Source: Basidiobolus meristosporus CBS 931.73 (taxonomy: Eukaryota > Fungi > Basidiobolomycota). From it: DNA of 64,000 nt. The DNA lies in assembly GCA_002104905.1 (NCBI GenBank), contig MCFE01000075.1, positions 119,341 through 183,340 on the forward strand. The letters are read 5' to 3'. The notes beneath the pieces are model-generated. The model was not told where the DNA came from. It ran no database searches and saw only the letters and a program-made list of their open reading frames with translations. Positions 2,980-64,000 of the stretch are shown piece after piece. Both the position numbers and the translations under genes were made by a program. Every line of letters starts with the position of its first letter. Position 1 is the stretch's first letter.

Positions 2980-4560
2980 ATGGTACAAGTGGACAACTGT
3001 CATGCGGCTGGTAGCATATGACCCAGAGACTGTCCTGATTCCAGCATGTGTTAAAAGTTGCATGGCATTCACATAAAAAAATGCTACCATTGCAATGTGT
3101 CCAAATTGTAAGGAATCCACCACCATGAAGGGAAAACATTGTTTACACTCCAGATATATTCCAGTAATACCCCATCTAAAGAAGTGTATGCAGTACAACA
3201 AATATTGCAATGCTATATAGTACTGCACTCAGTATCAATCAAGTGCAAACATATCTAATATACTCCATGGCAACCATTACAAACAGGTAAGAAGCAAGGG
3301 CTACTTTGAATGAATATATGACCATGCCTTTGCCTTAGCACTAGATAGATTCTCATTAAACAAGTACTCTACTAGCAAATCCTGCTGGCCACTGATTCTC
3401 ATCAATCTGAATCTGCTGCCCATCTTACGGTATCAGAGCAAAAATCTGATGGTAGTCTCACTGGTATCTGGGCCTAAATCACTATCCAACCTGGATAGCT
3501 ACCTGTATCCACTGCTAGATAAATTTTGTATGCTTTCCAGCAGTCTAACAGTAAATGACTGTCATGTAGAAGTGCATATTATTATCTGCATTGGAGATAC
3601 CCCAGCCATCAGCATGATGGCAGGTTTTTCTGGGTGCAATGGACAGTATTGCTGTCAAATGTGTGAGATCCTGGGGATTTACTCCATAACTCACACACAT
3701 TATTATTGGCCAAACACCAATGCTCAGAACATCATCTTCCAACAGAGAGAGTATATAGCAGTCAGCATGCAATTGCAGCAAAGTCAGCTAGTCATAAGCC
3801 ATTGGCCAGAATATGGAATCAATTGGAAACCAGAGATACTTAACACAGAGGGTATCTGTTGGCGCAAAAGCTTTCCACTGGGAGCAATGCATTTGCTTTT
3901 TAACAATATCCCTATACTGATGACCAAGTTGTTCATGGGACATTTCAAGCTTAATGAGCCCTTTGATATACCAGAGAAATTTGAAAGAATTTGCAAGATA
4001 TTACAGAATATCTGATACCCTAGGTACTTCTCACAGGCTCCAATCAACATTCTTATGCATATGTAACAATACAAATGCAAAGACTGGATGAACTGGATAT
4101 GCATTTATTCAAGTGGCTTTCCAAACCCATTCTCACCAAGAGTACATAGGAGGCATTGTAGGTCATATGTGGACATTGTAGGAATACCTATCCAGAAGCA
4201 GATCACTAATGCCAACTTGACACATCTACAGCTGCTGTGCAAGGAATTTGTAATGGGATTTGAGCGGCTATACTACAAACATAAAGCTGAACACAAAGAT
4301 CTCTGCCACTAATGTATTCATTCTCTACTCCATCTTGCTTGGTGTGTGGAGAATATTGGACCTTGCTTCACCTTTTGGGAGTTTTCTATGGAGCAGATGT
4401 GTGGGGAGATAGGAAGACTAGTCAAGTTGCAGGTACTACCATATCCCAATCTCATCAAGAATATTACTTTTAAGTCTGTCATGGATGTGATGAGCTGGCA
4501 TATGGAGGACAGCCAGGAAGAGTTGGAAATACTGAGGACAGATGTACACATTGAGACACC
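2980..4560 (+). pseudogene. CACTA/EnSpm (Transposase_21-like) transposase, multiply disrupted
   Basis: Fragments read WPLILINLNL..R....NL, VSGPKSLSNLDSYLYPLLD, CIGDTPAIS..AGFSG.NG.YCC.MCEI.G, LGAMHLLFNNI and ENIGPCFTFWEFSMEQMCGEIG. These match the motif order of fungal CACTA transposases. Stops and frameshifts occur throughout. Confidence 0.8.
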
Positions 4561-5669
4561 AATGCCTATGGCATTAAGAAGTTAAGCAGCCCCAATGCAT
4601 GGGTTATCAGCTAAGTAATGCAAAGTTGGGTTGGGTGCAACAAGCAACTAACTTTTATCAGGAAAACTCTACCAAGGTATGCCAGATTTCTCATGGTCAC
4701 AAGCCAACTTCTACACCATTCAACATGGAATTCTTGCAAACAAGAGCTAGAGCACACCTATAAGAGGGACTAGAATCTAGCAGGGAGAAGGAATATATTG
4801 GCTAAATACCAAGAATTTTTTTGTGGATATTCAGGAGGTAGTCATGGCAGAAGTAGCTACAACAAAGCATATGTTTGCAAGATGTATATATTACAAGCAG
4901 TAAAAGGTATATGGCAACTTTGCAAGTAGCACACTAAAGAGCTGTAAAGTTGAGGTAATAGAAGTATGTCAATTGCGCAGGTGTGTGCATTTGTAGAGGT
5001 TAATAAGCAGGAGGCCATAGTGTTTTTTACTTGAACTATATGTAGAATACCCAAGGCAGTAGTGGGTCAGTAAATAAAGAGGGGTGATTCTGCAGTGGAG
5101 TATATGAATTGCACAAGGGGAGGTAGAAAAAGGAAAACCATTTTGTAAATTGGTATGGTAGCATTATACAGAACTAGCTGTAGGCCACCATACTGCTGTA
5201 ATATTGCCATCAGAGTTTTGCTATGCGGCCATTGATCTACCATCAAGTTTTTTGCCATATATGACAATTGGATGACCTGGATGGTCAGATCCTTTTAAAA
5301 TAGTTGTAGAGTACATCAAGACAGCAACAATGCCATGCAATTATTGTCACAGTACCAATTGAGTCCCATCAAGTTTTGTAACCTTATTTGGTGGTAAAAT
5401 CAGCAAAACACTGTAGTGGGGTCACAGTGAGGCCCACTGACAGATGTTCTCATTCCCATATTTTCTACTTCCCTATTTCTCTACTACACTTATTTTAGTT
5501 TTATCCTGTTTGTCATACTTGACCAGTACTATCCCAAAAGCTGGCGGACTACCACACCTGCTTACCTTATTGCATAAGTTATACCTCACTTTATGTAAGA
5601 TTACTATCTATAAGTGCTTCTATATTAGGCAAGTACTTGCGCCAGTACCTGCAATACATGGTTAGCCCA

Positions 5670-52411: not shown

Positions 52412-52772
52412 ACCAAAAGCTGGTCATTAAATGATCCGTTGCAGAAGTGCTTATCTGGATCAGGCAATAGATCAGGCAATATCCGATAAAGATAGAAATT
52501 CTAGAGTCGTGGAGAACGGCAGAGAGTGGCTGACTATTAGTGAATATATGAATAAATTAATCATGCACTCGCACACTCCATTTATGTCATAACCAGCCAA
52601 CTGTCACCCACTTACGTATATATTAGATGGTGATGTATTTATAGATTGGTAGCCATAATAGGATATGATGCAATCCTAATGTTTGATCACATTAAGCTTG
52701 TATAGTTTAATAGCGTTTGTTGACATTGGATATGGTAGGGTCTAGCGTTTCTGGAAGATCATTTGTTTCCTT

Positions 52773-52862
52773 GCGTGGATGTTGTTACCGTATTGCTCGC
52801 GTCTGCGTAGACGTTGTTACCGTATTGCTCGCGTCTGCGTAGACGTTGTTACCGTATTGCTC
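52773..52862. repeat. 32-bp tandem repeat, about 2.8 copies
   Basis: GTTGTTACCGTATTGCTCGCGTCTGCGTAGAC at 52781 and 52813, with a partial copy at 52845. Confidence 0.95.
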
Positions 52863-53149
52863 TCAGCACCACTCTTGAACCCACACCGCCAACATCAGAC
52901 CAATCATACTCGTCATAGACTCCAGTCTCCTTATTGTGAGCGTGATAGTCATACATACCTACCCAGGCCAAGCAAGTACAGATCTATTGATCTTACTATA
53001 TATGGAAGGAACTTTCGTAGCTTCCCAACATCTGTATACATACTAATCAACTTCCATTTTTCTCTTTATAAAACCACGAGGTGCTGTCGCCGATGCCTAT
53101 TCTACCCTTGCCTTTCTAATTTTTCGGTGTACATCGACCTGTCACATAG

Positions 53150-54358
53150 ATGTCGAGCTCACGTATACAAGAGCCGCAAAACTCTTATAATCCATATAAC
53201 ACACGCCAACCCGATAACCATGGGAGGTTCGTCCCAAGTTCAAACAACGCTTGGTCAAGAAACGGTGCCCAGTACGAAATGAAGCCATTAGACCCCGCAT
53301 ACAACGGCCAAGGGAATTTCCACCGATTTGTTAGCTCAATTCGAGGCTCGAAAAAAAACAAAACATGCTTCTTCATAGGGCTGTTCATCTTCATACTAAT
53401 CCTTGGTGGTGCCATAGCCGCTGCCGCCATTCTGATACCCAAGAGTCGAAAGGACAAAACCATTCATTACGAGACCGACGCTGACGGATACATCGTGTGG
53501 AACAAAGATCCATCCTTGGTCCGTTCGTTCTATGGGATAGGATACACTTCGGAAAGCTCGCAATATCCTTATTGCGGTCTTACTCAAGAAGAGGTGATCG
53601 AGGACGTCAAGATCCTTTCCCAGCTGACACACCGTATCCGTCTCTACGGTATGGATTGTCACCAGGCCGAGTATACCCTAGAGGCAGTAAGACGCTTAAA
53701 AGCAGATACCAAGGTAACATTGACCATCTGGGTTGACGACAATGATGTTACATACAAGCGTCAGTATGATGAGTTCTTCCGGCTCCTGCAGAAATATGGC
53801 ACCAATTATATTGACGCAGTATCTGTTGGCAACGAAATGCTATTCCGCGAAGAAGTCACTCGAGCCAAGCTCTATCAGTATATTGCCGACGTTCGCTCCA
53901 AGGTTCAGAGCTTGGGGTACAACATCCCTGTTTCGACCACCGAGCTTGGAACCAACTATAATGCTGAATTACTCTCAAAAGTGGATGTTGGTATGGCGAA
54001 CATTCACCCTTACTTCGGAGGAACCACGGCTGAGAATGCTGCCAACTGGACTTTCACCTACTTGGAGGAAGAAGTCAAAATCAACGCTAAACAGGGCCAA
54101 GATGTGATCATTTCTGAGGTTGGCTGGCCAACGGAGGGCGCGTCCGAAAAATCTGCTGTTGCTAGTGTGAAGAACCAGCAAAGGTTTATGAACGATTTCG
54201 TTTGTGAGGCCAACAGAAGAGGAGTCAAATATTACTGGTTCGAAGCGCTGGACTTGAAATGGAAGACCAAGACGTGGACTGTCCTAGAGGGACATTGGGG
54301 AATGTTCGATGAGAAGAAAAAGGCCAAGATCACGCTACCCAATTGCCCACTAGAATAG
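53150..54358 (+). CDS. GH17 beta-1,3-glucanase/transglucosylase with an N-terminal TM anchor (BtgC-like)
   Basis: SFYGIGY, RIRLYG.DC.Q, VSVGNE.LFR, MANIHPYFGG, ISE.GWPT.G, YYWFEA.D..WK, E..WG.FD. Confidence 0.92.
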   Translation: MSSSRIQEPQNSYNPYNTRQPDNHGRFVPSSNNAWSRNGAQYEMKPLDPAYNGQGNFHRFVSSIRGSKKNKTCFFIGLFIFILILGGAIAAAAILIPKSRKDKTIHYETDADGYIVWNKDPSLVRSFYGIGYTSESSQYPYCGLTQEEVIEDVKILSQLTHRIRLYGMDCHQAEYTLEAVRRLKADTKVTLTIWVDDNDVTYKRQYDEFFRLLQKYGTNYIDAVSVGNEMLFREEVTRAKLYQYIADVRSKVQSLGYNIPVSTTELGTNYNAELLSKVDVGMANIHPYFGGTTAENAANWTFTYLEEEVKINAKQGQDVIISEVGWPTEGASEKSAVASVKNQQRFMNDFVCEANRRGVKYYWFEALDLKWKTKTWTVLEGHWGMFDEKKKAKITLPNCPLE

Positions 54359-54374
54359 TATGTACCTACCACTT

Positions 54375-54396
54375 TAACCCCTAACCCTAACACTAA
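54375..54396 (-). repeat. Short interstitial telomere-like tract (TAA CCCCTAA CCCTAA CACTAA on +)
   Basis: Three units read directly; orientation is opposite to the distal array. Confidence 0.4.
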
Positions 54397-55007: not shown

Positions 55008-55155
55008 TGCTGTAAGAGTCTTGGAGATATTGGAAGTGATTTGGGAGGACAAGTAGATTATGTGGTTTTCACTTGATGATTTATTGAATATAAAAGTAGT
55101 ATTTATACTTTGACATGGTCTTGGCATTACAAACACATAGAATAGGTTTAGAAGG
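55008..55155 (-). repeat. Partial copia LTR (3' part), inverted
   Basis: Reverse complement of ~9670-9810 and of 55500-55646. Confidence 0.85.
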
Positions 55156-55298
55156 AGGCAGCTGGGAGCTGAAGTTGTAGGAGGAGTAACAGCCAGTAGC
55201 TTGTGGAGTGCCTGTTTTGCCAGGATAATTCTCTTCTTCAGGTGTGCTCCAGAGTCTAGTCCAGTAGGAAGGAAAGCAATGCCAAGATGTGTAGCAGA
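55149..55298 (-). mobile_element. Internal fragment of the telomeric-array RT element (family A)
   Basis: Near-identical to 58044-58192 (FLPTGLDSGAHLKKRIILA.QALHKLLAVTPPTTSAPSCLL). Confidence 0.9.
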
Positions 55299-55646
55299 TG
55301 TTGTAAAATCTGTAATTCCACCTAAATATTCACCTAACTTAGTCACTTAGAGCATTACCTTCAAATCCTAGAGAATGCTGACCAAATTTCTTGTCAGGAT
55401 TTACTTAGAATATTTTCACCAAAATACCAGGTACCCAGAACATGAAAACTCTCAAAGTTGTCCAAACAGCCCCAAACATTGCACACATGTTCTTAGGACC
55501 TTTCTTGACCTACTCTACTTGTTTGTTAAGCCAAGACCATGTAAAAGTACAAATACTACTTTTACATTCCATTAATCATTAAGTGAAAAACACATAATCT
55601 ACATGTCCTCCCAATCACTTCCAATATCTCCAAGACTCTTACAACA
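55299..55646 (+). repeat. Copia LTR
   Basis: TGTTGTA...TACAACA termini; homologous to 9462-9892. Flanks differ, so there is no TSD. Confidence 0.88.
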
Positions 55647-56025
55647 GTGTGGACCTATGCAAGATTTATCCTTAGGTGGGATGAAGTATACAATCATTTT
55701 TATTGATGATTATACAAAATTCACATGGGTCTACTTCATGGAGAAAGAGGAAGAAGCTCTGTCTAATTTCAGGGAGTTCAAAGCCATGGTGGAGAGAGAA
55801 ACTGGTGAAAAATTCAAGAAAATATGCTCTGACAATGGTGAAGAATATAGCCCAGAACTCTTCATCCACTTCTGCAAAATTCATGGGATAAAGCAAGAGA
55901 CAACTGTACCATACTCCCCACAGCAAAATGGAGTAGCAGAACATGCAAACAGACCAATAATTGATATGGCAAGATCTATGATCCATGATCAAATATTATC
56001 CTATAATTTTTGGGTGGAATCAGTT
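55647..56025 (+). pseudogene. Ty1/copia integrase core fragment
   Basis: CGPM......GG.KY...FIDDYT...WVYF, SDNG.EY, T.PYSPQQNGVAE..NR.I..MARSM, FW. Confidence 0.92.
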
Positions 56026-57366
56026 CCCTATGAAAAATTATTGAGATGATCCCATCAAAAGGCTGTCACAAAGTTAATGTCCCATGACTGAGAGGTACTG
56101 ATCATGTCAGGACTCTGTCTAGAGGCTGTTGAAAAATAATTGCACCCCAGATTTCACAAAAAACTTTGTCAAAATTTCTCATCACAACAATATGTAAGTG
56201 GCTTTTGATTGGTTCCCTGCCAATTTGCTCACTTTCTGATCCTGGACACTCTATTGCCTCCTACATTTGTGTGAATTGATTGGCTATTGCCTCTTTTTCA
56301 CACTCCTTACTTCCTGACTCAACTGTCTCTTACTTTTCATGCGTACATATTGATTTATTTCCGTTGAAACTTCAGTTGTACCTCAATGGCCAATTGTATT
56401 GACCTATACTAGTCTCTATACCCTACACCAACATTAAGCCCAGCCCCACACTCAACAAGTAACTCCATTAAAATCCTCCACTCAATAAGTATTTCTGCTG
56501 TAACGCTCTGGTTCCACAACTTTGGCAGGAACCCAACGGCTTTATGTCACTGTTCACTCACTGGTTCCCACATGTCCTGGACTTCAGCTGGCACTGCAAG
56601 GTCTAGCTCCTCATCTGCCAGTCTTTGCAATAAATCCTTGCAATATTCCAGTGCATTTTCTTGAGCACTGCTCTTGAAGAAGTGCTGCAACCTTTTGGTG
56701 TGCCTATTAATGTTCCAAAACTCCACTGAAGGCATTGTGATAGTCTTTTGAGCTCTTGACATTGTAGCCTTGTCTGTCAGTGGGATCTCCACTCTGTCAA
56801 CAATGGAGGCTGTGGAGGCTGTGGTAGACAAATTGCCTTTTTCAGCAAACTCATCTACCTTGCTGGAGTGTATCTCAACTGGCTGAGCTTCCAACTCTTG
56901 TGAAAACAGCTGTTTTCTTGTTGGTAATTCTTCTTGGCTATGATGGGATTCAGTGTGTGCCTGGCTTGTGGCGTTAATTGGCAAGAACTGCAGTTTTTTT
57001 TGCATGCCTCCCTGTCTCAGGCTTGGGTAGACATTTTTCCCTTTACCTTTTCCTTTATCACTGCTACTTTGTCTGAGTGCTTCTTGTAAAGAACTATGTT
57101 TTCTCCTGGATAAATTCTGCTCTGACGCATCTGTTTTGGCCTGCTTGTCCCTTGCTGGCACTCTTCTGACAACCTGATGTTTCTTTTCATCTTGTTTTGA
57201 GATCTCAACTGTAGTTGTGACGGGCTCCTGTAAAAGTGGCTGGTTTTTATCACTGCCAGGTCCTTCACTGCTACTTTGACTGGGTGCATCTTGAGTGGTA
57301 CTACGCTTTTTCCTTGATAAATGTTGTGCTGGTGCATCCATGTCTGCCTGCTTGTCCTTAATCGGC
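56026..57366 (-). mobile_element. Accessory-ORF arm (copy 3) of the CMC-like element, with TIR at 56026, truncated at 57366 by the telomeric array
   Basis: Starts CCCTATGAAAAATTATT; homologous to 1-1120 and 7300-8530; retains CpGs. Confidence 0.8.
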
Positions 57367-58421
57367 TTAGGGGGGGGGGAGACAGTCACCAACAGGTGAA
57401 ATCTTTATTTCAGTTGAAACAAAGAAGCCAGCGCTACTGTTGTAGCTTTGATATAAGAGTGTGTAGCTGAGGGGAATTTGTAGGTAAGTTAATAAGAAGT
57501 GATGATAGTTCTTCAGTGCTCAAGACACTGTTCAGTGGGAAGGGGGGTAGCAAGAGAGGTACAAATGACTTGTGAACAACATTAATGAGGGGAATATGAT
57601 AAGGATTGATATTCATCATAAAGGGAGTGTGCTGCTGCAGATATTGCTGCCAAAGGTCTGTCAAGTACTTCAGGTAGGCCAGCTTGGGTTTTTCTGACAG
57701 CAGAATATAGTGAGCAAACTTCTTGACTTCAGGATCTCCAAGTATAGTTCTCCAGCAGGAGTCAGGTGTAGTGTGGTGTGTTCTCTTCCAGGCCTTAATC
57801 AGTGGGTTGTTGCAGTGGTGAAGTCTGAGGTATAATCTGGTTCTAAGGTAGAGAAGTCTGAGCTTATAGGGCATAAACCCAAAAGCACCAAGAATAGCAT
57901 GTCTGTAGGGGCATTCAGGCAAATGAGGCACCAAGGAGGTAATACACCATACTGCAAACTTGTCAAGCTTAGTGCAGTCTCTAGAAGTAAGAGAGAGAAG
58001 TGGTAAGCCAAATTCCAGGACAGGGAAGACAAACTGCTTGAGTAGAAGGAGGCAGCTGGGAGCTGAAGTTGTAGGAGGAGTAACAGCCAGTAGCTTGTGG
58101 AGTGCCTGTCTTGCCAGGATAATTCTCTTCTTCAGGTGTGCTCCAGAGTCTAGTCCAGTTGGAAGGAAAGGAAAGCCAAGATATGTAGCAGAAACCTGAG
58201 CAGGTAGAGTGGAGTTCTCCAAGTTGATGGGAGAGCCCAAAGGTATTGTCTTTGCAATGGAAAGCTGGAGATTATTCTTCTGCAGATACTGGTGGATGGT
58301 CTGGGAGTCTTGTTGCACATTGGAGGAGGATATTCTGATGTCATCAGCAAAGAGAGTAACCAGGCAGTCAGCTGAGAGTCTTGGGAAATCATTCAGGAAG
58401 ATGGCAAACAGTATAGGACCA
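57367..58421 (-). mobile_element. Unit A1: 3' ~1.05 kb of the LINE-type RT element
   Basis: Open frame from GPILFAIFLNDFP through FADD to ...SKLQQ* (57434), then a short 3' UTR and the tail. Confidence 0.92.
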
Positions 58422-60845
58422 GGGTTAGGGGGGGAGACAGTCACCAACAGGTGAAATCTTTATTTCAGTTGAAACAAAGAAGCCAGCGCTACTGTTGTAG
58501 CTTTGATACAAGAGTGTGTAGCTGAGGGGAATTTGTAGGTAAGTTAATAAGAAGTGATGACAGTTCTTCAGTGCTCAAGACACTGTTCAGTGGGAAGGGG
58601 GGTAGCAAGAGAGGTAAGAATGACTTGTGAACAACATTAATGAGGGGAATATGATAAGGATTGATATTCATCATAAAGGGAGTGTGCTGCTGCAGATATT
58701 GCTGCCAAAGGTCTGTCAAGTACTTCAGGTAGGCCAGCTTGGGTTTTTCTGACTGCAGAATATAGTGAGCAAACTTCTTGACTTCAGGATCTCCAAGTAT
58801 AGTTCTCCAGCAGGAGCCAGGTGTTGTGTGGTGTGTTCTCTTCCAGGCCTTAATCAGTGGGTTGTTGCAGTTGTGAAGTCTGAGGTATAATCTGGTTCTA
58901 AGGTAGAGAAGTCTGAGCTTATAGGGCATAAACCCAAAAGCACCAAGAATAGCATGTCTGTAGGGGCATTCAGGCAAATGAGGCACCAAGGAGGTAATGC
59001 ACCATACTGCAAACTTGTCAAGCTTAGTGCAGTCTCTAGAAGTAAGAGAGAGAAGTGGTAAGCCAAATTCCAGGACAGGGAAGACAAACTGCTTGAGTAG
59101 AAGGAGGCAGCTGGGAGCTGAAGTTGTAGGAGGAGTAACGCCCAGTAGCTTGTGGAGTGCCTGTCTTGCCAGGATAATTCTCTTCTTCAGGTGTGCTCCA
59201 GAGTCTAGTCAAGTAGGAAGGAAAGGAAAGCCAAGATATGTAGCAGAAACCTGAGCAGGTAGAGTGGAGTTCTCCAAGTTGATGGGAGAGCCCAAAGGCA
59301 CTGTCTTTGCAATGGAAAGCTGGAGATTATTCTTCTGCAGATACTGGTGGATGGTCTGGGAGTCTTGTTGCACATTGGAGGAGGATATTCTGATGTCATC
59401 AGCAAAGAGAGTAACCAGGCAGTCAGCTGAGAGTCTTGGGAAATCATTCAGGAAGATGGCAAACAGTATAGGACCAAGCACAGAGCCTTGAACCACTCCA
59501 TTAGGAACTGAGAACACAGCTGATTGCTCACTTGGGTGCAGAATTCTTGCTTGTGGATCCAGAAACAGAGACCTGACAAGGAGGGTGAGAGAGGTACTGG
59601 AGAAGCATTGCAACTTGGACCAAAGCAGATTTCTGTCAACTGAATCAAAGGCCTTAGTAATATCAAACAGAACAGAGGGATACTTGCACTGGAGAGAGTG
59701 ATCTTGGCTAAGTATGACTGCATATTCCAAGGAGAGGCCAGGAACAAAGCCAAACTGTGCAGGATGAAACTTGAGGGAGTCAGAGTAGAGCTCCTGGGCA
59801 AGCAGAAGCTCAAACACCTTTCTGCAGGTGGGCAGCAGAGATATTGGCCTGTAGGAGCTAGGATCCAGGTGCTTTCCTTTACCCTTGTACAGTGGCAGAA
59901 CATTTGCAAGGGACCATTCCTCAGGAGTAGAAAGCTGGGCTGAGCATTGCTGAAACAGTGGAAGCTGAAGTGCAGACATGGCCTTGGTACTAGTCTTCAG
60001 AAGCTCATAAGAGATTGTGTCCACACCTGGAGCAGTAGAGTTGGGAAGCCTCTTGAGCACATTATGGATTCTCCTTTGATCAAGTGCAAGTGGGATGGGC
60101 AGAGTCTTGAAGTCAGGATGAAAGCCAGGAGTTGAGTACTGCTTTGTAGAGAAGAAGATGTTAGCCAGCTGTTCTGTTGAAGGTAACTTCCTGGAAGAGG
60201 GCCTCATTGCCCTGTAGAGTCTTGATACTGTTCTTGTTATAGAGTTGGAAGATTGCAGAGGCAAAGAACTCATAATATGATCCCAGAGCTGAGTATGCAG
60301 AGTGTGGTGAATTGCCTTGGAGTGGTGTATTGCTGTCAGGAGGAGTTTCTCTGTTTTTGGGTTAGGGAAACTCAGGTAGCTTTGTTGCATGGCTGAAACA
60401 ATGGATTCCCATTTTCTTGAGGTAACAGCAGTAGTGTTGCATGGTAGTGAGAGGGAGGCAGACACCAGAATCAGATGCTTCACAAAGAGCCAGGCATAGT
60501 TGAGATCATCTGGCAGAGAAAGTAGCAAACTGGCAAGCTTCAAGTAGTTCCCAAAGTCTTTCTTCTGATTCTTGGTAGCTTTGTGGGTGAGCACAGTAAG
60601 TTTTAGCAGCTTCCTCTTCACAACTGGTTGCATAGAAAGGGACCAGGCTGGGTGGTCAGAGGCCCTCAAGGATCCTAGCTCAGCTCCAGAGAATTGCTTA
60701 ACTTCATTCACAAAGTAGAGGGCAGCAGCAGAAGGGCAGATCCAGTCAACACATCTTTTCTCAGATTGAGCACCTAGTGCTAGCAGGTGGCTTTCTCTCA
60801 GGAAGTTCAGTAGGAATGTAGACCTTGGCTTCATTCTTGCAGTGA
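58422..60845 (-). mobile_element. Unit A2: longest RT unit (2.4 kb); reading frame 60834->58489 (781 codons) with one premature TGA at 59209-59211
   Basis: APGVDTI, W..A.V.PLYKGKG...P..YRPISLL, FDITKAFDSV, GV.QGSVLGPILF and FADD define a non-LTR RT. VDWI..SDH near the N-terminus resembles the C-terminal end of an APE endonuclease. Confidence 0.92.
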
Positions 60846-61518
60846 GGGTTAGGGGGGGATGATAATCACCACAGGGTGAAATCTTTATTTAAATCATAAA
60901 TAAAGAAGCCAAATTTGAACATGAATATTTGAGATGCAGTAAGCCTACAAGATAAACTTGGACTTTGCTGTATCCCAAATATCCTCAATACTGAAGTCAA
61001 GTGGAGAATGTAGCAAAACTGCCTGCTCACTGTAGTGTTTCTTGAGGAAGTTTGTGACTTGAAGGGAAGGAGAGTTTTTCAACAAGCTGGTAAACCTTTT
61101 GAGGAGTTCTTTTTCCAGAGAGAATGGAACAAAGAGTGGAATGTCCAAATGATGTCTGAATATATGCTCTGAGAGCTCCCAATCCAGCATATTTTTGACT
61201 TCTTCTGTAAAATCTTCAACAATATCTTTGTCAAGAATAACTTCCAAGAGATCCCTGGCAATGTACTGAATGTTAATAATCTTAGGCATATGAATACCTA
61301 GGTCCTTGAGGTAGTTTCTTTGTTCTGAAATTGGGAGATAGCCAGCATTTCTGAAATAGCAAACAGCCCAATTGGCAGTGGGAGGAGTATCAGGGCTGAC
61401 AGGGAATCTTCTTCTGGCTTTAGGGTGCACTGGCTTAGGTGACTGTCTTATTGAAAGAGCAGCTGGCTTTGGATGAGCTTGAAGTGCTTGGGAGTATGTC
61501 TGAGTATGAATAACAGGA
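60846..61518 (-). mobile_element. Unit B1: RT-less unit with a 5'-truncated ORF (stop at 60945)
   Basis: Own 3' UTR and tail variant; protein homologous to the unit C ORF. Confidence 0.85.
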
Positions 61519-61679
61519 GTTAGGGTAGGGGGGGAGACAGTCACCAACAGGTGAAATCTTTATTTCAGTTGAAACAAAGAAGCCAGCGCTACTGTTGTAG
61601 CTTTGATACAAGAGTGTGTAGCTGAGGGGAATCTGTAGGTAAGTTAATGAGAAGTGATGATAGTTCTTCAGTGCTCAAG
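61519..61679 (-). mobile_element. Unit A3: ~160-nt 3' stub of family A
   Basis: Tail plus the end of the RT ORF, nearly identical to 58422-58578. Confidence 0.9.
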
Positions 61680-61860
61680 GGTTAGGGGAGGGAAAGTCAC
61701 TAAAGTAGGTGAAATCTTTATTTGATTTCAGACAAGTCTAACTACAAATAAAGAAGCCAGCTGGGAATCGAAGATTCCCAAAGTAAATACTAAGTTGAAT
61801 ATGAATATATCTAAGCTAAAGTTAAGGCAGTATCCCAGAGTACACTGGAGTTCAGGTTCA
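61680..61860 (-). mobile_element. Unit C1: ~180-nt 3' stub of family C
   Basis: Nearly identical to 62943-63121. Confidence 0.9.
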
Positions 61861-62913
61861 GGGTTAGGGGGAGACAGTCACCAACAGGGGGGGGGGGAGA
61901 CAGTCACCAACAGGTGAAATCTTTATTTCAGTTGAAACAAAGAAGCCAGCGCTACTGTTGTAGCTTTGATACAAGAGTGTGTAGCTGAGGGAAATTTGTA
62001 GGTAAGTTAATAAGAAGTGATGACAGTTCTTCAGTGCTCAAGACACTGTTCAGTGGGAAGGGGGGTAGCAAGAGAGGTAAGAATGACTTGTGAACAACAT
62101 TAATGAGGGGAATGTGATAAGGATTGATATTCATCATAAAGGGAGTGTGCTGCTGCAGATATTGCTGCCAAAGGTCTGTCAAGTACTTCAGGTAGGCCAG
62201 CTTGGGTTTTTCTGACTGCAGAATAAATTCTGCAAACTTCTTGACTTCAGGATCTCCAAGTATAGTTCTCCAGCAGGAGCCAGGTGTTGTGTGGTGTGTT
62301 CTCTTCCAGGCCTTAATCAGTGGGTTGTTGCAGTGGTGAAGTCTGAGATATAATCTGGTTCTAAGGTAGAGAAGTCTGATCTTATAGGGCATAAACCCAA
62401 AAGCACCAAGAATAGCATGTCTGTAGGGGCATTCAGGCAAATGAGGCACCAAGGAGGTAATGCACCATACTGCAAACTTGTCAAGCTTAGTGCAGTCTCT
62501 AGAAGTAAGAGAGAGAAGTGGTAAGCCAAATTCCAGTACAGGGAAGACAAACTGCTTGAGTAGAAGAAGGCAGCTGGGAGCTGAAGTTGTAGGAGGAGTA
62601 ACAGCCAGTAGCTTGTGGAGTGCCTGTCTTGCCAGGATAATTCTCTTCTTCAGGTGTGCTCCAGAGTCTAGTCCAGTAGGAAGGAAAGCAAAGCCAAGAT
62701 ATGTAGCAGAAACCTGAGCAGGTAGAGTGGAGTTCTCTAAGGTGATGGGAGAGCCCAAAGGTACTGTCTTTGCAATGGAAAGCTGGAGATTATTCTTCTG
62801 CAGATACTGGTGGATGGTCTGGGAGTCTTGTTGCACATTGGAGGAGGATATTCTGATGTCATCAGCAAAGAGAGTAACCAGGCAGTCAGCTGAGAGTCTT
62901 GGGAAATCATTCA
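61861..62913 (-). mobile_element. Units A4 (abortive ~27 nt) and A5 (~1.03 kb 3' part of the RT element)
   Basis: GGGTTAGGGGG-AGACAGTCACCAACAGG then G-run-AGACAGTCACCAACAGGTG...; RT C-terminal ORF 61952..62836. Confidence 0.9.
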
Positions 62914-62950
62914 GGGTTAGGGGTTAGGGGTTAGGGTTAGGGTTAGGGGG
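62914..62950 (+). repeat. Internal telomeric tract GGG-(TTAGGGG)2-(TTAGGG)2-TTAGGGGG
   Basis: Read directly between the truncated A5 and the tail of C2. Confidence 0.95.
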
Positions 62951-63913
62951 AGGGAAAGTCACCAAAGTAGGTGAAATCTTTATTTGATTTCAGACAAGTC
63001 TAACTACAAATAAAGAAGCCAGCTGGGAATAGAAGATTCCCAAAGTAAACACTAAGTTGAATATGAATAAATCTAAGCTAAAGTTAAGGCAGTATCCCAG
63101 AGTACACTGGAGTTCAGGTTCATGGGGGAGTGAAGTAGATAAGCTTGAGAGATATAATAATCTTTTAAGAAGTGGGTAACAGCAGGTGAAGGGGAGTTTT
63201 TGATAAGTGAAGTGAATCTTGAGATCAGAGATTCCTCTAATGAGAAGGTCTTGTAAACTGGAGAATCAGGAAACTCTTTGAAGGCATGGTCAGTAGGTTC
63301 CCAGTAAAACTGGTCAGAGACATTTTGAGAGAATTGTTTAGCAATACTTTTGTCAAGTACTACCTCCAGAGTGTGATGGTTGATAAATCTCATGTTGACA
63401 ATCTTGGATAAGTTGTAACCTTGTTGCTTGAGATACATCCTATGCTGAGATATGGGAATAAACTCCACATTGGCAAAGTAGCAGACAGCCCAGTCAGTAG
63501 CAGGAGGCAAATCAGAAGTGGCAGGAAACTTTCTTTTGGTCTTGGGAGGAGCAGCAGGATGTCTTGAGGAAGCAGGAACAGACTTTTTGACAACTTCAGA
63601 GTAGGAAGAGTGAGCAGGAGCAGATGATTCTTGAGGAGTCTTGTTGGCAGGAAGAGTTGTCTCAGGGACAATAGATTCTTGCAGATCAGAGAAGGCAGAA
63701 AAGAGCTTTTGAACTTGTTTCTTGAGTAGAGCATTTTCAGCTTCAACAAGTGCAAGCCTTTCCTCAAGGAAAGAAATCTGAAGGGAATGGAGTGAAGGCA
63801 TAAGAAATAAGAAGAAGAGGGTAAGATGGGGTGGGTGGGTGGGAAAATTAGCAGGGAGAAGAGAAGGAAGGAGCAAAAATTCCAGAAGTCAGAATTTATA
63901 GATGGATGGACAA
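62943..63913 (-). mobile_element. Unit C2: ~1-kb RT-less unit containing a complete ORF
   Basis: Pyrimidine-rich 5' leader, then the ORF, 3' UTR and tail. Confidence 0.88.
63073..63801 (-). CDS. 242-aa protein of unit C (coiled-coil N-terminus, P/S/K-rich linker, conserved globular domain); putative ORF1/Gag analogue
   Basis: ATG at 63801 and stop at 63073. LEERLALVEAENALLKKQVQKL shows a heptad pattern. The domain aligns with the unit B ORF. Confidence 0.75.
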   Translation of the reverse strand: MPSLHSLQISFLEERLALVEAENALLKKQVQKLFSAFSDLQESIVPETTLPANKTPQESSAPAHSSYSEVVKKSVPASSRHPAAPPKTKRKFPATSDLPPATDWAVCYFANVEFIPISQHRMYLKQQGYNLSKIVNMRFINHHTLEVVLDKSIAKQFSQNVSDQFYWEPTDHAFKEFPDSPVYKTFSLEESLISRFTSLIKNSPSPAVTHFLKDYYISQAYLLHSPMNLNSSVLWDTALTLA

Positions 63914-64000
63914 GGGTTAGGGGGGGAGGAAAGTCACCAAGTGGTGAAATCTTTATTTACTTATGACAAGTATCTAAAGAAGCCAAGTTAATCTGAAGTT
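63914..64000 (-). mobile_element. Unit D1: 3' tail of a fourth family, running off the window
   Basis: GGGTTAGGGGGGG-AGGAAAGTCACC-AAGT-GGTGAAATCTTTATTT...TAAAGAAGCC with a different downstream sequence. Confidence 0.85.

Follow-up and report, generated by a model that had tools for sequence, protein, structure and literature searches.

That the maintenance of chromosome ends can be divided between retroelements and telomerase, or pass from one to the other, is known mainly from retrotransposons dedicated to telomeres. A survey of telomeric elements published in 2023 covers SART/TRAS, GilM/GilT, Zepp, MoTeR1, Tx1-1_ACar, Athena and the Drosophila HTT elements (PMC10088271). In Magnaporthe oryzae, MoTeR1 and its non-autonomous partner MoTeR2, which has the same ends, form head-to-tail arrays with their 5' ends outward and with interstitial TTAGGG tracts of half to more than 20 repeats (PMC7367193). 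Together with FoTeR of Fusarium oxysporum and Cnl1 of Cryptococcus, these elements belong to a clade with SLACS/CRE and carry a C-terminal restriction-enzyme-like (REL) endonuclease (PMC12857005). Here we describe an array of comparable layout, built on a different type of element, at one end of a 64,000-nucleotide stretch of the genome of Basidiobolus meristosporus CBS 931.73 (positions 119,341 to 183,340 of contig MCFE01000075.1, assembly GCA_002104905.1; hereafter the window). Our favoured explanation is that a community of telomere-specific retroelements adds itself to chromosome ends, priming on the free end in preference to a nick, and we put this at about an even chance of being correct.

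Positions 57367-64000 of the window form a head-to-tail array of nine 5'-truncated units of non-LTR type (lacking long terminal repeats) that reaches the contig end, the end of the window being the exact end of contig C1090 (183,340 bases). All open frames of the units lie on the - strand, which is sense, while the + strand is antisense, corresponds to complementary DNA (cDNA) and forms one continuous strand with the telomeric G strand; the 3' ends of the units point towards the gene-bearing interior and their 5' ends point outward. The elements fall into five families: A and E are long interspersed nuclear elements (LINEs) with an open reading frame (ORF) 1, an in-frame TGA and an ORF2; B and C have ORF1 only; and D resembles a short interspersed nuclear element (SINE). 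The units of the window are as follows, APE and RT denoting apurinic/apyrimidinic endonuclease and reverse transcriptase.

57367..58421, - strand: unit 1, family A (APE-RT LINE), 3'-terminal 1.05 kb; seed gcTTAG+G10, joined to non-array DNA
58422..60845, - strand: unit 2, family A, 3'-terminal 2.4 kb; seed GGGTTA + G7
60846..61519, - strand: unit 3, family B, ORF1-only, 5'-truncated; ORF at 60945-61547
61520..61679, - strand: unit 4, family A, 160 nt; seed TTAGGGTAGGG + G
61680..61860, - strand: unit 5, family C, 180 nt; 97% identity to 62947-63125
61861..61888, - strand: unit 6, family A abortive micro-unit, ~27 nt, ending within the 3' hairpin
61889..62913, - strand: unit 7, family A, 3'-terminal 1.02 kb
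62914..63912, - strand: unit 8, family C, ORF1-only, full length or nearly so; ORF at 63073-63876
63913..64000, - strand: unit 9, family D (SINE-like), 3' 88 nt only, cut by the contig end

The original prediction, made from the letters of this stretch, had described at least nine units in one orientation with their 3' ends inward and variably truncated 5' ends outward, and a reading of 56500-64000 together with the positions of a recurrent tail word confirms this. It was also right that the + strand is at once the G-rich telomere strand and the cDNA strand, and that several different non-LTR families, here A, B, C and D, share one terminal array. On the + strand a unit starts with (T)TAGGG, a G-run and a short family-specific stretch, followed by a conserved module, ...TCACC-loop-GGTGAAATCTTTATTT.... 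Eight copies of the tail word GGTGAAATCTTTATTT, a 16-mer, are present in the window; they lie between 57395 and 63943 on the + strand, and the - strand has none; nine units have only eight tail words because unit 6 (61861-61888) ends before the word is reached. As to the junction seed, a (T)TAGGG-type sequence is indeed typical, but it is not always the predicted GGGTTAGGG: it reads gcTTAG+G10 at 57367 and TTAGGGTAGGG at 61520, five variant telomere-like repeats at 62914-62950 precede unit 8, and the join of unit 6 to unit 7 at 61888/61889 is a G-run only, without any TTA. Units 1 and 2 are 99% identical over their common part, and unit 2 contains the RT domain (Pfam RVT_1, E 9.8e-26) and the C-terminal half of the endonuclease domain (...MKPRST to SDH), with a truncation point that has GGGT in common with the telomere repeat. 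GC skew in the array is +0.24 to +0.33. Chance is excluded as a source of the array words, since TTAGGGTTAGGG is expected 0.00 times in shuffled sequence and a reversed-pattern control for the tail word has no genome-wide occurrence, the tail word itself being found 1589 times forward and 150 times in reverse.

CpG dinucleotides are nearly absent from the elements: their observed/expected ratio is 0.02 in the array, compared with 0.72 for the interior. Of the seven CpGs in a full-length A copy (4.58 kb), six lie within the first 165 nt, in the 5' untranslated region (UTR). Such a pattern points to avoidance of CpG, or to its loss through methylation over a long time, with a small cluster retained at a putative promoter.

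The same arrays recur across the genome. A search with the 2.4-kb unit found at least 57 matches with identities of 93-100%, including 40 that were full length and ≥99% identical, and arrays reached the contig end wherever a contig end was visible. The original prediction had suggested looking for a terminal (TTAGGG)n just beyond 64 kb; there is none on the window contig, which ends where the window ends, but long perfect (TTAGGG)n tracts of at least about 200 bp cap at least ten other array contigs. Comparison of family A units between ends gives identities of 98-99.7%, and the ends differ in the order of their units. About 26 of the first 90 contigs carry arrays, which by extrapolation gives an estimate of a few hundred contig ends, or roughly a quarter to a third of the 1366 contigs. 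With its near-identical copies, intact frames and hundreds to more than 1000 units, the system looks very active.

Arrays of this kind could in principle be produced by the assembly or the reads, for instance by chimeric long reads, and it is true that many array contigs are just 10-20 kb and that the 30-mer (TTAGGG)5 has a marked strand bias genome-wide (7145 forward versus 73 reverse). Against this, short-read unitigs from DNA of the source sample contain more than 100 distinct joints, each leading from a point internal to a unit to the start of a tail, so the junctions are not an artefact of long-read assembly. The intact reading frames and the recurrence of the same architecture in contigs from other samples argue likewise, and we attach almost no weight to an artefact. 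The relatives in these samples are 48-80% identical and have the tail and the CCCTAA junctions in common with the present elements, so the system is conserved in the lineage.

Some features of the contigs deserve a remark. Telomere tracts are nearly always at the 3' end of the contig + strand, and contigs seem to have one telomere each, in the same orientation; such an orientation bias could be an assembly convention or reflect unassembled telomeric reads, and the true number of chromosome ends is uncertain. One array (L015, G000:C781:55367-60790) has at oriented positions 4441-5424 an A unit split at ~2.95 kb by unrelated DNA that lacks a telomere seed and is probably another transposon inserted into the array; on the proximal side of the interruption there is an A fragment of greater age (95.6% identity). 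A sequencing run of 2022 filed under a different organism (X5) contributed two low-depth contigs with 98-99% identity to the RT region of family A (window 59184-59441 and 60100-60282), and could contain the same fungus in another sample, or contamination.

Evidence on how the arrays grow comes from their junctions, of which 82 were read in 30 pieces of the genome that together contain ~198 kb of array sequence. A telomere-like unit stands directly before the tail in 76 junctions (one unit in 48, two in 22 and three to seven in 6) and there is none in the other 6; the terminal tracts, at no less than about 200 bp, are far longer. Units are joined to each other head-to-tail in 65 of 65 cases, and all 15 junctions with non-array DNA on the proximal side have at most two telomere-like units. 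The length of the G-run depends on the family, being 6-7 in A, 4 in C and E and ~5 in D, which fits a composition of GGG plus a templated C-run. There is no sign of poly(A), in that no T-run occurs at any of the 82 junctions; instead the elements end in a C-run and then CCCTAA.

Truncation is equally informative. Only 7 of 27 A units are full length and the 20 truncated copies all end at different points, while 17 of 20 D units, which are 0.55 kb long, are full length and share the same precise 5' nucleotide. This dependence of the full-length share on length indicates incomplete reverse transcription, or limited processivity of the RT, and not erosion. Abortive units of 18-56 nt end in or just past the 3' hairpins and are followed directly by a new tail, with two of the joins lacking TTA; they look like the result of aborted synthesis followed by a template switch. 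The same observations bear on the view that recombination from one chromosome end to another is the main cause of the spread and growth of the arrays, through break-induced replication or a process like alternative lengthening of telomeres (ALT), with retrotransposition being rare and ancient. Homogenisation of this kind could give A units that are 98-99.7% identical across ends without a gradient, and such processes are documented for MoTeR arrays (PMC7367193). It sits poorly with 20 truncation points that are all different, with the variable order of units, with more than 100 distinct short-read joints and with a full-length bias that tracks element length as RT processivity predicts, and we consider it improbable as the principal process.

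Full-length copies of family A measure ~4.6 kb. ORF1 has 523 codons, and its product combines a zinc motif (CPNC...CKC) with a coiled coil and, at the C-terminus, a domain that is conserved; ORF2, with 922 codons, continues in the same frame past a single in-frame TGA and has no ATG near its start. The context of this codon, GCC-TGA-CTN (CTA, CTC or CTT), is identical in five lineages that differ by up to ~50% in protein, and such conservation is probably that of a programmed stop-codon read-through yielding an ORF1-ORF2 fusion. Within ORF2, residues 466-678 match RVT_1 (E 2.6e-25), and residues 88-202 give a weak match to Exo_endo_phos_2. The RT is of LINE type and not of Penelope type, as the original prediction maintained on the strength of the motifs DITKAFDSV, QGSVLGP and FADD, which are present in the translation; its nearest solved sequence is human L1 ORF2p (E 6e-13), and its database matches are confined to generic APE+RT clusters and LINE ORF2 proteins. 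Family E is a second APE+RT LINE, with an ORF2 of 949 codons.

The partner families are simpler. B and C have a single ORF1-like gene directly upstream of the tail; their products are 48% identical to each other and have 35% identity (E 5e-21) to the C-terminal domain of A ORF1, while a homologue search with the family C ORF returned nothing at E<=0.001. A model of the ORF1 C-terminal domain has a beta-alpha-beta-beta-alpha-beta topology followed by helices and is tentatively RRM-like; Foldseek gave no match to it at E<=0.001, only weak RRM rows. Family D is non-coding, ~550 nt when complete, and its first ~70 nt contain an A-box-like TAGCCTTGTGG and a perfect B box, GGTTCAAATCC. No tRNA was called in it by ARAGORN or Rfam, and the only Rfam row it produced, a sub-threshold match to mir-318, was treated as chance. 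We also observed CCCTAACCCT(AA) in the sense orientation near the 5' end of both A (in the 5' UTR, ~165 nt from the 5' end, locus L031) and D (in its head, L035:2758-3339), so that the tip of a newly made cDNA lies near a sequence resembling TTAGGG.

Other classes of retroelement were considered and rejected. A regex scan found neither REL nor GIY-YIG motifs in ORF1 and ORF2, and Pfam identified nothing C-terminal to the RT, which bears out the predicted lack of a C-terminal REL nuclease; the same type of scan found no CCHC zinc knuckle in either ORF, the only zinc motif of ORF1 being its single CPNC...CKC. An element of the REL/CRE clade was therefore rejected, there being no C-terminal CCHC or RHD...E...K/RPD motif in ORF1 or ORF2. 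We also rejected a Penelope-like element, given the LINE-type RT, the presence of an APE domain, the lack of GIY-YIG and the lack of a hammerhead in two loci (none was found by Rfam in the array loci L031 and L035 at E<=1), and an LTR element, there being no LTR-element motifs or domains.

What unites the five families, and their relatives in other samples, is a 3' module consisting of two stems, a short spacer and a C-run, of which the window provides the following example.

58435..58490, - strand: 3' module; stem 1 UCUUUGUUUC/GAAAUAAAGA, stem 2 UCACC/GGUGA

Across families stem 1 is UCUUUAUUUN/NAAAUAAAGA with a closing pair that is G-C, A-U, C-G or U-G depending on the family, and loop lengths vary. 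The cells of the stems are 96% paired, compared with at most 52% when the partner is slid, and there is one covarying pair. The AATAAA in the tail was considered as a poly(A) signal, which it probably is not, since it forms one strand of stem 1.

As a mechanism, we suggest that A and E would be the source of two proteins, a Gag-like one from ORF1 and an endonuclease-RT from ORF2, the latter through read-through of TGA-CTA, and that their RT would copy B, C and D in trans by way of the common 3' module. The primer would be the 3'-OH of the G-rich telomere strand ending ...TTAGGG, whose final GGG would pair with the terminal C-run of the RNA, and each cDNA would lengthen the chromosome outward with its 5' end distal. 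The favoured substrates would be free ends with at most one or two repeats: ends left by breakage or erosion and, most of all, the 3' terminus of a newly synthesised cDNA. Between such additions telomerase would add short stretches and the RT would jump from RNA to RNA as template, until telomerase makes a full (TTAGGG)n cap; a role for telomerase is suggested by the perfect terminal tracts. In this scheme, cDNA synthesis on C-tailed RNAs from a G-strand 3'-OH with a final GGG has good support, and the explanations differ over what would supply that 3'-OH. Priming on a free end is supported by the seeds of one or two units, by the array bases on non-telomeric DNA and by the seedless micro-units.

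The endonuclease is the principal complication. In full-length copies elsewhere in the genome ORF2 opens with an AP-type endonuclease domain, within or past which the copies in the window are truncated. The AlphaFold model of the domain (pLDDT 83) retrieved APE1, ExoIII and the endonucleases of TRAS1 and L1 in Foldseek, with E ~1e-10 and, for TRAS1, a TM by target of 0.69-0.70, and a profile of the family matches the L1 endonuclease at E 1.2e-13. Pfam alone gives Exo_endo_phos_2 at 21 bits, below the cut-off of 27.4, and the domain sequence alone had no match among PDB sequences. Aligned catalytic motifs (N, D, Y, GDLN for GDxN, VDW and SDH) are kept in A, E and four foreign lineages, with the metal-binding Glu being Asp in every lineage examined. 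When A is compared with a relative at 79% identity, the endonuclease has a ratio of non-synonymous to synonymous substitution rates (dN/dS) of 0.13, the RT one of 0.07 and the C-terminal region one of 0.12, at a dS of ~1.1-1.5, which is near saturation. These ratios indicate that the endonuclease domain is under purifying selection and clearly maintained.

Such conservation weighs against addition to free ends, which would need no endonuclease, and makes priming on a free G-overhang a proposal and no necessity; in asserting it the original prediction went too far, having missed a domain that is truncated in the window copies. Other points have the same tendency. The sampled loci were the best matches to one query and are no unbiased sample; the C-run is a predicted 3' end of the RNA, read from the DNA; and no age gradient is seen along the arrays, in which all A units are 98-99.7% alike. 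Moreover, short seeds may reflect survival bias, because interstitial tracts of more than three repeats break in Magnaporthe (PMC7367193).

A rival explanation keeps the elements and their polarity but has each insertion made by classical target-primed reverse transcription, in which the APE-type endonuclease would nick the G strand inside duplex (TTAGGG)n; insertions that trap long tracts would be fragile and lost, which would leave junctions that look short. Its merits are the APE fold with its conserved catalytic motifs and low dN/dS, and the fact that TRAS1, which uses an endonuclease, has the same polarity as the array described here. Nicking of this kind is the mode of TRAS/SART and has been proposed for MoTeR and FoTeR too; the fragility of tracts in another fungus is a precedent for their loss, and three to seven repeats are in fact retained in 6 of the 82 junctions. 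However, 93% of junctions have two units or fewer and six have none, and a random nick in a tract of ~30 repeats would need very strong loss to leave so little. The two joins consisting of a G-run only and the abortive micro-units present no TTAGGG target, and all 15 array bases rest on non-telomeric DNA with at most two units. The change of the metal-binding Glu to Asp may also count against nicking. We regard insertion at a nick as a serious contender that falls somewhat short of an even chance, and continue to favour priming on the free end.

A broader claim would be that chromosome ends in this early-diverging fungus are routinely healed and extended by end-primed reverse transcription, through five co-operating families that recognise one C-tailed 3' module with two hairpins and alternate with telomerase, in a mutualism like that of HeT-A/TART that evolved independently. 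This can be put forward only tentatively, and we lean towards doubting it. If true, the fragmentation of the genome might have a cause in the ease with which broken ends are healed.

The DNA on the proximal side of the array contains two further features.

56547..57366, - strand: array base, non-array DNA; open frame without a Pfam match, continuing open into the junction
55149..55298, - strand: isolated family A relic, 150 nt, 97% identity, same orientation as the array

The array base has a 93-nt direct repeat inside it, and the relic is the only match to an array family in the 57 kb interior of the window. It is surrounded by rearranged transposon fragments (55008-56049): inverted repeats at 55008-55153 and 55502-55646, 87-95% complementary, flank it, and a copia-type integrase fragment (rve, E 2.6e-12) follows at 55603-56049. 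Further in lies a gene for a GH17 glucanase (53150-54358); 21 nt past its stop codon, CCCTAACCCTAA at 54379-54390 represents two telomere repeats in the opposite orientation with no element attached, and upstream of the gene there are three tandem copies of a 32-nt unit, 84-100% identical, at 52772-52867.

In its general features the array has close analogues among fungi. Like those of MoTeR, FoTeR and Cnl1, it is a telomeric array in a fungus with TTAGGG repeats, composed of 5'-truncated elements with distal 5' ends and with telomere-like sequence near the 5' end (PMC7367193, PMC12857005). Unlike these elements of the CRE/SLACS type, which have a single ORF and a C-terminal REL endonuclease of the PD-(D/E)XK type, those described here have ORF1 and ORF2 and an N-terminal APE domain, without REL or CCHC. 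The ORF1-only partners and the SINE-like partner are likewise unreported for MoTeR or FoTeR. SART1 and TRAS1 of Bombyx mori (R1 clade) are also APE-type LINEs, specific for telomere repeats, in a host with canonical repeats, and the TRAS1 endonuclease is among the best structural matches to the endonuclease found here. SART and TRAS have poly(A) 3' ends and CCHC knuckles in ORF1 and are sited within long TTAGG tracts, whereas our elements end in a C-run, lack the knuckle in ORF1 and have seeds mostly of one or two units.

In architecture the system can be likened to HeT-A, TART and TAHRE of Drosophila (jockey clade), with which it has in common a division into Gag-only elements and elements with Gag+RT, head-to-tail arrays whose 5' ends face outward, variable 5' truncation and strand bias. 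Drosophila has no telomerase repeats and its junctions are poly(A), unlike the (TTAGGG)n caps and TTAGGG-type seeds seen here. Athena and Coprina, endonuclease-deficient Penelope-like elements, too are terminal and 5'-truncated, with short telomere-repeat joins and a 3' end complementary to the telomere repeat (PMC8557442), as Gladyshev and Arkhipova reportedly described in 2007. They differ in having a Penelope/TERT-like RT and hammerhead motifs and in lacking an endonuclease, where the present elements have a LINE-type RT and an APE endonuclease.

A literature search found no published description of this system. Its novelty in fungi, which the original prediction had claimed for the whole, does not extend to the general design, known from MoTeR, FoTeR and Cnl1; it lies in the type of element and in its Gag-only and SINE partners. 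What is new is an APE-type ORF1/ORF2 LINE at fungal telomeres, a tail made of a C-run and a telomere complement with no poly(A), two Gag-only families and a SINE-like family that share the 3' module of the LINEs, and the scale on which they occur. The junction record, with its seeds of one or two repeats and its abortive micro-units, is unusually informative on the competition between RT and telomerase at new ends, and high activity would make the choice between a free end and an endonuclease nick testable by experiment. Set beside the known systems, this case would be an independent invention on the chassis of an APE-type LINE, which combines a Drosophila-like split between Gag-only and RT-bearing elements with a SINE, in a host that still makes TTAGGG caps.

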